64,000 bases of DNA from Macrostomum lignano (taxonomy: Eukaryota). The notes under the pieces were generated by a model. That model did not search any database. It worked only from the letters and a program-made list of their open reading frames with translations, and was not told the origin of the DNA. Location of the stretch: the NCBI GenBank assembly GCA_002269645.1, contig NIVC01000463.1, positions 62,001 through 126,000 on the forward strand. Direction: 5' to 3'. This document shows positions 46,901-52,900 of the stretch, one piece after another (position 1 is the first letter of the stretch; each line of letters opens with the position of its first letter). Position numbers and translations under genes: made by a program.

Positions 46901-49900
46901 TGCTGTGAATATGTATGGAGAATTTGAATCATGGTAACGTTTTTTTCAAACGATACATTCGATTCGGATGCACATGAGTTGGCAAGAATTTATATTAGCA
47001 TGCAACTGCACGATGCACGATGGCTTTGGCACCAAAATAAGGGCGTACTTTTTTAATTCCGACTTTCTGAAATCCGTGACATCGCTATCAGCCTCAATCG
47101 CGTTGATTAATAAATAAATAATAAATAAGCCCAAGATTGTTAAGAAACTCCTGACAATGAAGCCACTGAGCTCGTGTCATTCTTAATTCTTGCACCTTTA
47201 CATGTAAGCGGCGTCCTGCATCCGAGGGCACGCATTCGAGCGAAAAACTTAACCTTGGATACAGCAGGGATAGCTTTCATTGACTGATTGGTTGATAATT
47301 AATTTATTGATAAATTGATTAAAAGATGTAAATTAACTTCTGAAATTATTCCACTATTTCCAAATGATTCATTATTTGATTGATTTATTGATTTATTGAT
47401 TTATGGATTTATTGATTGATTTTTTGATTGATTTGATTGATTAATTGATTGATTGATTGATCGATTGATTTATTGTTTGATTGAATGATTTATTGATTGA
47501 TTGAATGATTTATTGATTGATTGAATGATTTATTGATCGATTGATTTGTTGATTGATTGATTGATTGATTATTAGATTATTAGATTGATTTATTGATTGA
47601 TTTATTTATTGATTGATTTTTTGATTGATTTGATTGATTAATTGATTGATTGATTGATAGATGGATGTATGGATGGATGAAGGGATGAGTGATTGATTGA
47701 TTGATCGATTGATTTATTGATTGATTGAATGATTTATTGATCGATTGATTTGTTGATTGATTGATTGATTGATTGATTGATTAATTAATTAGTTGATTGA
47801 TTGATTGGTTGGTTGGTTGATTAATTGATTGATTGATTGAATGATTGGTTGGTTGGTTGATTGATTGATTGGTTGATTGATTGATTGATTGGTTAGTTGG
47901 TTGATTGGTTGATTGGTTGATTGATTGACTGATTGACTGATTGATTGATTGATTGGTTGATTGATTGATATCCCGTTTGATTGATTGGCGCATTCAGTTT
48001 CTAAGTGCTTTAAAAAACGATTACCAATCGTTAATCAGTATCCAAGGCAATAAAACCGCTCTGCAATGCGCGTCGGGATGTCCGGGCTTTTGTGGGGCTC
48101 TCGGCGGCCGGGACCCCCTGCTGAGTGACGGCGAGGGGGTCCCCGGACTCGCTGCGCCCAAATCAGCTTCTGCTCAAACGAAATCAATCGGACAAAACTC
48201 GCTTAGCTACGACAAACCAGAATAACAATTTTTAAAATCGATTTGGCTTCAGTGTTTGAGCTACAAACTACTGTTATTTGATTTTTAAAATCTGTTTTGA
48301 TGATGTGACTAACATATTTTGCATTTTTCTATTATATATTGACTGAGCAATTGCATGACAGACAGATTGTTTGTCGAAATCAAGCGGCGAGTCTGTACTA
48401 ATTCAAGTGTAAAAAAGCGCCTTCTACTCGTAATCGGTGTATAGGTTAAAGCTCTATAGATATCAGATCTATCAGACCTAGAGACTGAGGAGTACCCATC
48501 AATTAGTTCGCCCATATCGATTTGAGCAGAAGCCTGCGTCCGGAACCCCTCAGCGCTTTTTTGCCAGCTCACTCGTGTCCACGCTATCCCTTCCGCCTTC
48601 CGCCTCGTCTCCATCAGTGGGAGAACATTGGACAGCTAAAGTTAAAGGACACTACACTTGTAAATTGTGCAAATCTCGCTTTCGGTTTCAAAGACGGTTT
48701 TCTCCGGCTTTTCAGTTATGATCCACAGGAACTACATAGATTAAGTAGACAGACAGACAGACAGACAGACAGGCAGACAGACAGACAGACAGACAGACAG
48801 ACAGACAGACAGACAGACAGACAGACAGACAGACAGACAGACAGACAGACAGACAGACAGACAAACAAACAGATAGATAGATAGATAGATAGATAGATAG
48901 ATAGATAGATAGATAGATAGATAGATAGATAGATAGATAGATAGATAGATAGATAGATAGATAGACAGACAGACAGACAGACAGACAGACAGACAGACAG
49001 ACAGACAGACAGACAGACAGACAGACAGACAGACAGACAGACAGACAGACAGACAGACAGACAGACAGACAGACAGACAGACAGACAGACAAACAAACAG
49101 ATAGATAGATAGATAGATAGATAGATAGATAGATAGATAGATAGATAGATAGATAGATAGATAGATAGATAGATAGATAGATAGATAGATAGATAGATAG
49201 ATAGATAGATAGATAGATAGATAGATAGATAGATAGATAGATAGATAGATAGATAGATAGATAGATAGATAGATAGATAGATAGATAGATAGATAGATAG
49301 ATAGATAGATAGATAGATAGATAGATAGATAGATAGATAGATAGATAGATAGATAGATAGATAGATAGATAGATAGATAGATAGATAGATAGATAGATAG
49401 ATAGATAGATAGATAGATAGATAGATAGATAGATAGATAGATAGATAGATAGATAGATAGATAGATAGATAGATAGATAGATAGATAGATAGATAGATAG
49501 ATAGATAGATAGATAGATAGATAGATAGATAGATAGATAGATAGATAGATAGATAGATAGATAGATAGATAGATAGATAGATACATAGATAGATAGATAG
49601 ATAGATGCCGTCTCAAAAAACAAATTACCGCTGCCAGCGAAATTTGCTCGTTTTGTGAGTGCGTGGCGTCCTTACTAATTTGGATTCCTAATTGCGGGAA
49701 TTCGTTTTGGAGCCACCGTTCACCCTCAAAAGCCCGGACTAATATGAAGGTTCCGCCTGCCTTACCATGTAGGTCAGGTAGGAGATTCTCGGTAGCGACT
49801 GCGCGACCACGTACTTGAACGTGACGCTGGTTAATACCAGGGTGAAGCTCAGCCTCAGCCTGTACTCGCACTTATTTGGTTCAACAGCGAATGTGGCAAA

Positions 49901-52900
49901 TGACAGGCCGGATATCATGAACTGTAATACGAGTTCGAGAGAGGGAGGCACAGGATTGAACTAAGTACGAGCTCAGGTAAACAACTCTCACCATGTAAGT
50001 TAAGTAGGAAATCTTTGGTAGCGACTGGTTAATGACGAACTTGAAAGCCACTGAGGTGAGAAACAGCGTGAATGACAGCTGCAATCGGCTCTCTGGCTTG
50101 TCCGCTCCCACAGCGAATGTGGCAAATGACAGGCCTGTGATGAAGAACTTAACGGATGGCGTGGGTTCACTGTAACCATTGCTCATCTCGGACTTCGAAG
50201 TTGCAAAGGCTATTAATTGTTACGTCTTATATGAAATATGAAATATAGATATATAACATCAAACCTACGAGTATGTGACAGTGAGCCACTGTCTTACTCT
50301 CGCTCTTACCTCCACCGTCGTACCATCGCTCTTTACTCTATTTCAGGGGTTGGCAAACTCCGGCCCGTGGGCCACATGCGAAACTAGATAGATAGAGGAG
50401 AATCTCCTCTCCTCTCCTCCCCTCCCTACCCTTTCCTCTCCTCTCCTCTCCTCTCCTCTCCTCCCTCCCCTCCCCTACCCTCTCCTCTCCTCTCCTCTCC
50501 TCTCCTCTCCTCTCCTCGCCTCTCCTCTCCTCCCCTCCCCTCTCCTCTCCTCTCCTCTCCTCTCCTCTCCTCCCCTCCCCTCCCCTCTCCTCTCCTCTCC
50601 TCTCCTCTCCTCTCCTCTCCTCCCTCCCCTCCCCTACCCTCTCCTCTCCTCTCCTCTCCTCTCCTCTCCTCTCCTCTCCTCTCCTCTCCTCTCCTCTCCT
50701 CTCCTCGCCTCTCCTCTCCTCCCCTCCCTCTCCTCTCCTCTCCTCTCCTCGCCTCTCCTCTCCTCTCCTCTCCTTTCCGCTCTCCTCTCCTCTCCTCTCC
50801 TCTCCTCTCCTCTCCTTTCTCCTCTCCTCTCTAATCTCCTATCTTCTTGACCTTCTCCTCTCCTTCTCTTCTCTTCTCTTCTCTCCTCTCTTCTCTCCTA
50901 TTTCATCTTTTCTCTCCCCTCGTCTCCTTTCGTCTCATTTATCTTCTTTCTCCTATTTCTCTTCTCAATTTCCTCTTCTTTGCCCCTCCTCTGGCCCGCA
51001 GTCATGCGCTGGGTTCTCTATCTGGCCTTTAGGGTAAAAAGTTTGCTGACCCCTGCTCTATATTATCCACTGTAGCTGCAATCTTTACTCCTTACTCTTA
51101 TATGTTCTACGTAGCAATGACCCATACATCCGAGATTAAGTTGCTTATTTTATCAAGAAATACAACGATCTTTTGAATTATAAATGAATAAAAAAGTCAG
51201 AGGCCAAGAAACTCGGAAATGGTAAACAAGCAGAACTGGAAAGAGCAGCAAAATATTTCATCAAAGGTAGCGTTGAATAAATGAACTATGCCTGATGTAA
51301 ATCCAAGTGAACACTAGTAATGAACTGGGCTCATGAATAACAGGACACGGACCAGCCAACACTGACCCACTGCACGGCAACTGTAACTTAACAGCTATTG
51401 TTTAGCCAACGCATCAACAAACCCAACTTCATAAACCTGGCGCCGATGCCTCTGCAGGCTGATTTCCCACCAGCTGTTTGCCATTAATTAGCCTGGCTTG
51501 GGTCAACAATTCTGCATTACTTGCGCCACGCCTACCTGCAAGTCCGTTCGCTTTTACCTATATTTCTCTCTGTGCTCTTTCTCCCAGATGAAGGACCCGC
51601 AGTTGTAGGCCTCCTCTGCAGGGCACATTGAAGCAGCCATCGCGTGCCAATCCATCTAACACAAGTTCTCTATTGATGCACGCGACGGGTAATATAGCAT
51701 CGTCTCCTTTGTTGAAGCATTACAGCTGCATGCCTATAAGTCTATTACAGGCTATGTTTGTTTAACTTACTGTCAAGTCAACTTTTCCATGCCAGTGTAG
51801 CTCTAATACTAACGAAACAATCTTGGATAATATATCAGAGTCCAATATTGGGAACATTAGGAGACAAGTGGATTAACCTTGAATACGAGTAATTAATATG
51901 AGTTCTACTCGATTAGAAACTCACCATAATAAGAAAGACATTCCAGTAGAAGTAACCGGGCCTCCTAGCGGCTCTGCATCTCACAGCTAAGCACGGATGC
52001 GACTTCATAGTGCTGGAGAACTCCTGGGTCAGAGTTCGCTTCTCAACTTCAATGTGCTCGTGTAGGCGCCACTCTTGTTGATCAACGAATGTCTGAATAT
52101 TGATGCCGCTCATCTCCGCCTCGTCTGGAATGAGCTCGATCTCTGTGTCTGGTCGCTCGGATGTGATCGTGATTGTCAGGTCCTAAAAGTGATCGGTGTG
52201 GAACTAATTTGAACTTGATTAACAAATTAACACGCTGTGGCAATGCTAGTGGTGGGCTCAGCAGTGTGAAAAGACTATTCAGAGAATAGTGGGCACTTTC
52301 TCTGAATGTCATTGAGACAATAGTGGGCACTTTCCTCTGAATGTCATTGAGACAATAGTGGGCACTCTCTCTGAATGTCATTGAGACAATAGTGAACACT
52401 CTCTCTGAATGTCATTGAGACAATAGTGAACACTCTCTCTGAATGTCATTGAGACAATAGTGAACACCTTCTCTGAATGGCATTGAGACAATAGTGAACA
52501 CTCTCTCTGAATGTCATTGAGACAATAGTGAACACTCTCTCTGAATGTCATTGAGACAATAGTGAACACTCTCTCTGAATGTCATTGAGACAATAGTGAA
52601 CACTCTCTCTGAATGTCATTGAGACAATAGTGGACACTTTCTCTGAATGTCATTGAGACAATAGTGGACACTTTCTCTGAATGTCATTGAGACAATAGTG
52701 AACACTCTCTCTGAATGTCATTGAGACAATAGTGGACACTTTCTCTGAATGTCATTGAGACAATAGTGAACACTCTCTCTGAATGTCATTGAGACAATAG
52801 TGGACACTTTCTCTGAATGTCATTGAGACAATAGTGGACACTTTCTCTGAATGTCATTGAGACAATAGTGGACACTTTCTCTGAATGTCATTGAGACAAT

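Follow-up and report, generated by a model that had tools for sequence, protein, structure and literature searches.

Tandem pore-helix exons, most likely used one at a time, in a Cys-less ELIC-like receptor gene of the flatworm Macrostomum lignano

We analyzed a 64,000-nucleotide stretch of the genome of the free-living flatworm Macrostomum lignano (positions 62,001 to 126,000 of contig NIVC01000463.1, assembly GCA_002269645.1; hereafter "the window", whose own numbering is used throughout), which holds a gene predicted to encode a subunit of a ligand-gated ion channel of the pentameric kind (pLGIC) and, within that gene, two adjacent homologous exons, 6a and 6b, each encoding a complete version of the pore-lining helix M2. 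The gene extends over ~41.5-60.7 kb of the window on the minus strand (Table 1), all exons from 57273 to 45366 (exons 3-7) are in phase 0, and the best database match of the assembled protein is a Macrostomum lignano model with 96% identity.

The two exons, hereafter cassette A (exon 6a) and cassette B (exon 6b), were read directly on the minus strand: each is 156 nt long, in phase 0 and open in frame 0 only, with exon 6a flanked by ..gttaAG upstream and GTgaga downstream, and exon 6b by ..attacAG and GTaagg. The encoded peptides, FFITGLSFATFAVGADKPESRLQLSFTLFLTSVAFKFVINQSLPKISYLTYM for cassette A and FMISGLSFATFAVEPNKCEYRLRLSFTLVLTSVTFKYVVAQSLPRISYLTYM for cassette B, differ at 14 of 52 residues (73% protein identity) and the exons are identical at 107 of 156 nt. 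When one cassette served as a tblastn query against the 64-kb window, the other was recovered with E = 8e-21, a likeness far above chance, and no third copy was found. Pore positions were numbered from R0', L9' and P23', and the alignment to the bacterial channel ELIC gives the same placement. On this numbering the cassettes differ at -1' (S/Y), 2' (Q/R), 13' (A/T) and 16' (F/Y), and further at 8' (F/V), 18' (I/V), 19' (N/A) and 24' (K/R); outside M2, two differences lie in M1 (F/M, T/S) and four more in the M1-M2 loop (GADKPES vs EPNKCEY). A first-pass annotation of this DNA had described two 156-nt exons 70 nt apart with intact splice sites, the same 14 differences including those at -1', 2', 13', 16' and in the loop, and flanking junctions at 51925 and 45683; all of this agrees with our reading, with ..VFLIM followed by gt at the former and ag followed by DKYVLMS.. 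at the latter. Its assignment of the encoded segment to the M1 end, the loop between M1 and M2, M2 itself and the M2-M3 loop likewise holds, both in the phmmer alignment to ELIC and in an AlphaFold model in which M1 spans residues 185-208, M2 residues 214-238 and M3 begins at 244, the cassette covering residues 197-248.

Table 1. Exons, spacer and repeats of the Cys-less receptor gene, in window coordinates
Feature	Coordinates	Strand	Content	Basis
Exon 1, coding part (approximate)	60540..60605	(-)	Opens at start codon of MSSVQELVNLKKKAKRRRRTGG	
Exon 2 (3' end approximate)	59760..60272	(-)	Conserved N-terminal extension without signal peptide	tblastn of P0130
Exon 3	57145..57273	(-)	Start of ligand-binding domain (VVVEIRVVFLKIGEIDT..)	
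Exon 4	53216..53416	(-)	Ligand-binding-domain strands and first half of Cys-less Pro-loop (..LETLELNDFPLDVQ)	
Exon 5 (constitutive)	51925..52182	(-)	Second half of Pro-loop to first half of M1 (DLTITITS...YFYWNVFLIM); donor 51925 common to both cassettes	
Exon 6a (cassette A)	49992..50147	(-)	End of M1, M1-M2 loop GADKPES, M2, M2-M3 loop	Sequence, frame, AG/GT, ELIC M2 alignment, family consensus
Spacer intron 6a/6b	49922..49991	(-)	70 nt; strong polypyrimidine tract ahead of 6b	Direct reading of sequence
Exon 6b (cassette B)	49766..49921	(-)	Same segment, loop EPNKCEY, pore Y-1', R2', V8', T13', Y16'	Sequence, AG/GT, match to B-type paralogs
Exon 7 (constitutive)	45366..45683	(-)	M3, M3-M4 loop, M4 (DKYVLMS...FIFWLYYD); acceptor 45683 common to both cassettes	
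Exon 8	45013..45060	(-)	Basic post-M4 tail (ACRRRREMHKKDREYK)	
Last coding exon	41469..41609	(-)	NKIQFYQMVETHG...HSQLTNH, then stop	
Features behind the orientation question	N-terminal exons 59760-60605; post-M4 exon 45013-45060	(-)		
Tandem repeats	45715-46846, 47365-47969, 48746-49606, 50403-50895, 52277-53004, 56015-56500, 57326-58529, 58833-59759, 62610-62909			

One 26-nt stretch, GGCCTGTCATTTGCCACATTCGCTGT (encoding GLSFATFAV; exon positions 13-38, window 50135-50110 and 49909-49884), is identical in both cassettes. It includes eight consecutive identical codons, whereas elsewhere a codon is shared at only 16 of the 30 conserved residues, and either gene conversion along this tract or an RNA-level constraint, e.g., from a splicing enhancer, is possible.

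The family of the gene was assessed through domain, structure and motif comparisons. The Pfam ligand-binding domain PF02931 is matched with 31 bits against a cut-off of 26; the transmembrane domain PF02932 reaches 19.9 bits against a cut-off of 28.1, and for that region the alignment to ELIC and the fold matches stand in. Among solved structures, ELIC is the nearest (phmmer E = 3e-16, residues 3-257), and the AlphaFold model of isoform B (pLDDT 83.6) displays the expected strands and helices, its top Foldseek matches all being GLIC, ELIC, GlyR or GABA-A (E ~1e-16; TM-score 0.55-0.64). The F/YPxD motif is present across the exon 4/5 junction (LELNDFPLDVQ), with F105, P106 and D108 invariant in a 36-sequence alignment, and both cassettes carry Glu at -2'. 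The Pro-loop motif is LELNDFPLDVQDL with the flanking cysteines absent: a strict Cys-loop receptor is expected to have a 13-residue-spaced cysteine pair, and ETLELNDFPLDVQDLT lacks a cysteine at either flank. The closest relatives, proteins of flatworms, annelids, nemerteans, rotifers and molluscs, have the same loop. Given the Pfam domain, the ELIC match, the fold matches and the loop without flanking cysteines, we assign the gene, from its sequence and predicted fold, to the metazoan "Cys-less Pro-loop" pLGIC clade described by Jaiteh et al. 2016 (PMC4795631); according to Johnson 2023 (PMC9874803), the schistosome "Cys-less LGICs" (ligand-gated ion channels) and planarian gabrg1/2 belong to the same clade. 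The label of an orphan Cys-less family used in the first-pass annotation is correct. As to orthology with alpha6, a nicotinic acetylcholine receptor (nAChR) of insects, the outcome is negative: none of the 120 matches listed bears a nicotinic receptor name, and the nearest structures are those of ELIC and anionic receptors. We know of no Cys-less clade member with a known ligand, selectivity or function.

At the level of the pore, cassette A carries S-1', Q2', T6', L9', A13' and F16', with Q2', T6', L9', A13' and F16' as in ELIC, while cassette B carries Y-1', R2', T13' and Y16'. Across 113 family proteins from outside Macrostomum, 106 have Q at position 2' and 105 have N at -1'; deviations at the two positions are confined together to the same seven variant proteins, the sole exception being an F-1' with Q2' kept. 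Since cassette A matches residues that are near-invariant across these 113 proteins, it is the family's canonical pore, from which cassette B departs specifically in two places, the inner mouth with Y-1' and R2' and the upper gate with T13' and Y16'. For 2' and 16', the relevance to the pore that had been claimed for the differing positions is supported by work on ELIC: its open pore is tightest at 2' (Q233), and its resting gates are at 16' and 9' (PMC9668969).

Next, we evaluated how the two cassettes have been maintained over time. Between A and B, the synonymous divergence (dS) is 1.37, i.e., near saturation, and the non-synonymous divergence (dN) 0.25, for an omega of ~0.18. Cassette B is identical at 43-45 of 52 residues (83-87%) to the M2 segment of B-type proteins from Schistosoma, Paragonimus and Hymenolepis, and cassette A at 46-47 of 52 to the A-type set from the same three genera; A and B themselves share 38 of 52, and the cassettes cluster by type rather than by species (a misaligned ELIC row was left out of this identity table). 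In terms of the proportions of synonymous (pS) and non-synonymous (pN) differences, M. lignano B compared to the Paragonimus B exon yields a pS of 0.97 and a pN of 0.15, and M. lignano A compared to the Paragonimus A exon a pN of 0.064. In Neodermata, A-type and B-type proteins are the products of distinct genes (49-68% identical over BLASTP-aligned regions) with a single cassette exon at each locus, and the A-type is also present in every sampled neodermatan group with a B-type (Schistosoma, Paragonimus and Hymenolepis). A search of the Paragonimus A-type paralog for remnants of a B exon gave no more than a weak match ~1 kb downstream (E = 0.53), which was not counted. Within M. lignano, a diverged homeolog model (P0023) has kept both cassettes, with B identical at 51 of 52 residues and A unchanged across its in-frame part, from R0' onward, while its M3-M4 region is only ~52% identical. 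From these comparisons, both pore types are older than the Macrostomorpha/Neodermata split, neither cassette is a decaying copy, and both have evolved under purifying selection since then.

These patterns bear directly on the possibility that one exon, most likely 6b, is an unused relic of exon duplication and that the gene makes the canonical A isoform only. A second homeolog model, P0064, does join A straight to M3 and skip B, as a relic would predict. The frame of exon 6b is nevertheless open, with a strong polypyrimidine tract and CAG ahead of it and a GTAAG donor behind it; although synonymous sites are saturated, its protein sequence still matches the parasitic-flatworm B-type M2 at 83-87% of residues, and it is nearly unchanged (51/52) in the diverged homeolog; and the RefSeq models of a nemertean, described below, use both versions. 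We thus consider a relic 6b to be highly improbable.

A survey of the exon duplication across taxa, proposed in the first-pass annotation, found pairs in the nemertean Lineus longissimus, as isoforms, and in the annelid Owenia fusiformis, as tandem exons, with single cassettes in other lineages. The Lineus gene, which ranges over 136 kb, falls in the same orthologue group with 100% bootstrap in a neighbor-joining tree of ligand-binding domains. Its RefSeq isoforms X1 (XP_064647155.1) and X2 (XP_064647157.1), of 522 residues each, are identical at 512 of these, and all 10 differences are located inside the 52-residue cassette; overall, each of the 11 RefSeq isoform models has exactly one cassette and none has both. 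The cassettes correspond to a canonical (NRLQLSF...SVAFKFV) and a variant form (KRLVLAF...SVTFKYV), with the same length and boundaries as in Macrostomum. The variant, known from automated isoform models alone, has T13', Y16' and the S in M1 in common with flatworm B, but V2' and K-1' instead of R2' and Y/L-1'. The isoforms are named "GABA receptor subunit gamma-1/2/3-like" in the database though they are Cys-less and ELIC-like.

In the Owenia orthologue (locus L003, 55710-56227), a tandem pair of 156-nt cassettes in phase 0 is bordered by the same exons as in Macrostomum; one is canonical and one has Arg at 2', and both have polypyrimidine-CAG acceptors and GTAAGT donors. There, unlike in Macrostomum, the variant cassette (RLRLAF, with Met at 16') comes first and the canonical one second, and the spacer is 206 nt; the annotated protein includes the canonical exon only. 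In the annelid Capitella teleta (locus L004, 10001-18767), two tandem whole-gene copies lie ~2 kb apart, and their cassettes differ only at 12' and 13' (VA vs IT; dS 0.72, dN 0.026), a duplication of the gene in place of the exon duplication of other lineages. The Paralvinella and Ridgeia orthologues have one cassette each, and no alternative M2 cassettes were found in the mollusc, rotifer, Lingula (brachiopod) and cestode clusters or in the other Lineus and Tubulanus paralogs, in which isoforms vary elsewhere. Judging from these genes and models, the alternative M2 cassette appears to recur across three phyla.

The M. lignano proteins among the database matches listed represent a single gene type carrying two cassettes, none being a separate paralog with A or B alone. 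The most economical history would accordingly be that of an ancestral two-cassette gene which was duplicated, each neodermatan copy then losing the opposite cassette. The Owenia duplication was probably independent of the flatworm pair, since the exon order is reversed and the Owenia variant is no closer to flatworm B (32/52) than to canonical cassettes (38/52); its Arg at 2' would in that case be convergent.

Exons 6a and 6b agree with the published sequence criteria for mutually exclusive exons (Pillmann 2011; Hatje 2017, PMC5740500), i.e., they are adjacent, of equal length, in the same frame, homologous and provided with splice sites. The further criterion of one exon per transcript is borne out by annotation in Lineus only, through its 11 isoform models. 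Most likely, 6a and 6b are used one at a time; the alternative use suggested in the first-pass annotation is the reading best supported by the Lineus isoforms, the Owenia tandem pair and the neodermatan B-type paralogs. Specifically, exon 5 (donor 51925) would be spliced in each mRNA to one cassette, 6a or 6b, and that cassette to exon 7 (acceptor 45683); the resulting subunits would have the same ligand-binding domain, M3 and M4 and differ only in the final M1 turns, the M1-M2 loop and the pore helix.

The M. lignano proteins in UniProt would instead have both exons included in series, for a subunit with an extra half-M1 and M2. Two automated models, A0A1I8GSY0 and A0A1I8GBW9 (P0001 and P0130; window 49766-60710), splice 6a to 6b, a junction that preserves the frame, and end inside 6b. 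We see hardly any chance that such a subunit is made: these models are truncated predictions, and the 52 extra residues correspond to ~1.5 membrane helices, which would turn M3 and M4 the other way round in the membrane and disrupt the five-fold pore, so that serial cassettes cannot be expected to yield a pLGIC topology. The two cassettes do not occur together in any of the 11 isoforms of Lineus, and the spacer in the homeolog is just 39 nt. The serial arrangement in A0A1I8GSY0 and A0A1I8GBW9 is thus best regarded as an annotation error. Searching database proteins with a junction-spanning isoform-B query returned short fragments only, with no protein joining B to M3.

If the exons are mutually exclusive, exclusivity may be enforced at least partly by steric interference in the short spacer, a step we propose with low confidence. 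This intron measures 70 nt here and 39 nt in the homeolog, compared to 1-4 kb for the gene's other introns and to an average of 1.1-1.4 kb for M. lignano introns (PMC5730564). In the homeolog model P0023, it is read through as 13 residues (VSTANCHPPPHHQ), the 39 nt (GTG...CAG) being in frame and free of stops; the spacer thus seems to be short in both M. lignano copies without its sequence being conserved. Within the 70 nt, no adenosine occurs at intron positions 37-56, hence a usable branch point would be located at most 36 nt from the 6a donor. This is nearer than the ~50 nt used as a limit for steric interference in human mutually exclusive exons (PMC5740500), which favors steric exclusion.

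Another aspect to consider is the orientation of the subunit in the membrane. Across the family protein set (P0001-P0252), 192 proteins begin with Met, and a hydrophobic stretch resembling a signal peptide is absent from all of these (0/192); the 100-230 residues that extend the N terminus ahead of the ligand-binding domain are hydrophilic, with conserved motifs. In the same 192 proteins, the 15 residues after M4 include on average 4.9 Lys+Arg, compared to 1.9 before M4. The tail after M4 has a median length of 54 residues and a basic motif, DAC[KR]RRR.M.KKDRE. The absence of a signal peptide, the basic post-M4 tail and the missing disulphide suggest that the ligand-binding domain may face the cytosol, i.e., an inverted topology, or that the channel may be organellar. 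Were the ligand-binding domain cytosolic, the "inner" end of M2 would flip. No discussion of an inverted topology of the family was found in the literature.

Taken together, the best explanation for the locus as a whole is that 6a and 6b form a mutually exclusive exon pair in a Cys-less ELIC-like subunit gene, giving subunits with different pores, and we consider this explanation probable. Several observations weigh against it. The only database proteins for the locus are the two automated models with both cassettes in series. Both exons are multiples of 3, so that double inclusion or skipping would not be removed by frameshift or nonsense-mediated decay, and flatworms may well be able to splice an intron of 70 nt. 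Steric hindrance cannot be the general mechanism given the 206-nt spacer in Owenia, and folding of window 49700-50220 gave no signal of competing RNA structure (z = -0.83). The neighbor-joining tree of ligand-binding domains does not place the neodermatan gene duplication before or after the Macrostomum split, grouping Macrostomum with the B-paralogs in 50% of replicates, with the A-paralogs in 33%, and outside both in 10%. Finally, the predicted membrane orientation of the family is in doubt and, to our knowledge, no member of the Cys-less clade has been functionally expressed.

With a mutually exclusive pair, the consequences for the channel can be outlined from the residues exchanged. Up to five Arg in a 2' ring, next to the retained ring of -2' Glu, should change conductance, charge selectivity or rectification, and Tyr at 16' should affect the upper hydrophobic gate, so homomers or mixed A/B pentamers of this one gene would conduct differently in response to the same ligand. 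Different permeation by the A and B pores is a reasonable but unproven expectation. Alternatively, the exons may be truly alternative, but with isoforms that differ mainly in gating, desensitisation, choice of assembly partner or trafficking rather than in ion selectivity, B-type subunits perhaps working only in heteropentamers with A-type ones. Mutating the 9' and 16' gates of ELIC reportedly leaves conduction unchanged (PMC9668969), differences between the cassettes extend to M1 and the M1-M2 loop, and A-type accompanies B-type in all three sampled neodermatan genera with a B-type, a co-occurrence that suits either heteromers or two channel types. Conversely, the most consistent changes across variant cassettes are those at -1' and 2', which are classical selectivity and conductance positions, and 2' is where the open pore of ELIC is most constricted (PMC9668969). 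On balance, we view a difference confined mainly to gating or assembly as possible, though not likely.

A broader conjecture can be built on the same positions. Three or more spiralian phyla would have kept the exon duplication, or evolved it anew, because a toggle at -1'/2' (Gln to Arg, Lys or Val) switches the channel between two permeation modes, e.g., cation-selective vs anion-permeable or strongly rectifying. Parasitic flatworms would have hard-wired this switch into two genes through duplication and reciprocal exon loss, and the Arg at 2' in Owenia would be convergent. This scenario is speculative and, in our opinion, rather doubtful; if true, one receptor gene and one ligand could give signals of opposite sign.

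The closest known parallel is the insect nAChR alpha6, in which mutually exclusive exons 8a/8b/8c encode the second transmembrane helix, TM2 (PMC1919356, PMC6393475), a precedent that the first-pass annotation had correctly cited as established. In both cases, a pLGIC gene has tandem homologous pore-helix exons that are, or in Macrostomum would be, used singly with a constant ligand-binding domain. However, nAChR alpha6 belongs to a distant cationic Cys-loop subfamily with known ligand and pharmacology, and its exon is not homologous in origin, whereas the Macrostomum pair belongs to a Cys-less, orphan, ELIC-like gene in which the swap brings a charged Arg at 2'. By analogy, the resemblance would be one of mechanism only.

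Compared to ELIC itself (Erwinia; PDB 2VL0, 8D67 and others), the M2 of cassette A is nearly the same (RLQTSFTLMLTVVAYAF vs RLQLSFTLFLTSVAFKF), but ELIC is bacterial, with a signal peptide, a periplasmic ligand-binding domain and Glu rather than Ser/Asn at -1', and without terminal extensions or introns. The Cys-less LGICs of parasitic flatworms (Smp_336620, Smp_334630, Smp_135040) and planarian gabrg1/gabrg2 (PMC9874803) resemble the Macrostomum gene in the absence of Cys-loop cysteines, in FPxD and in Glu at -2'. They differ in that the two M2 types of parasitic flatworms are paralogous genes with one cassette per gene, compared to two exons in one gene in Macrostomum.

The first-pass annotation also stated that no such exons were known in the Cys-less family. 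This stands insofar as we found no paper describing any: the main text of Jaiteh et al. has no word starting with "splic" (PMC4795631), and no mention of M2 splice variants was seen in the parts of Johnson et al. consulted (PMC9874803). It does not extend to sequence databases, in which an alternative cassette was already implicit in the comparison of Lineus XP_064647155.1 and XP_064647157.1.

Outside of the cassettes, nearly every intron of the gene contains a long micro- or minisatellite, e.g., (TAGA)x215, (TCTCC)x99, a 22-mer x51 or a 36-mer x34, and several of these yield long spurious open reading frames; such intron satellites fit the repeat-rich genome of M. lignano. A candidate optional exon at window 44054-44107 (..WLAKKQEWHAKALEL..) resembles a C-terminal segment of the homeolog models and of Lineus. 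It is skipped in the model of this copy (P0125), and no good donor site was seen.

The Cys-less clade, a large one among animal pLGICs, comprises proteins of flatworms, annelids, molluscs, nemerteans and rotifers; it is not found in vertebrates and has been put forward as a target for anthelmintics (PMC9874803). For annotation, the present analysis corrects the M. lignano UniProt models, which concatenate the cassettes, and the names of the Lineus isoforms, which are not GABA-A gamma subunits. Beyond the precedent of nAChR alpha6, the interest of the system lies in its apparent recurrence across phyla, in the charged substitution at 2', and in how splicing here contrasts with paralogs elsewhere. 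Two natural pores on a subunit that is the same in all other parts, with a near-invariant Q2' replaced by Arg, would provide a ready-made experiment on permeation in an ELIC-like eukaryotic channel. And with one gene and two cassettes in Macrostomum vs two genes with one cassette each in Neodermata, alternative splicing and gene duplication may be doing the same job in different flatworms.

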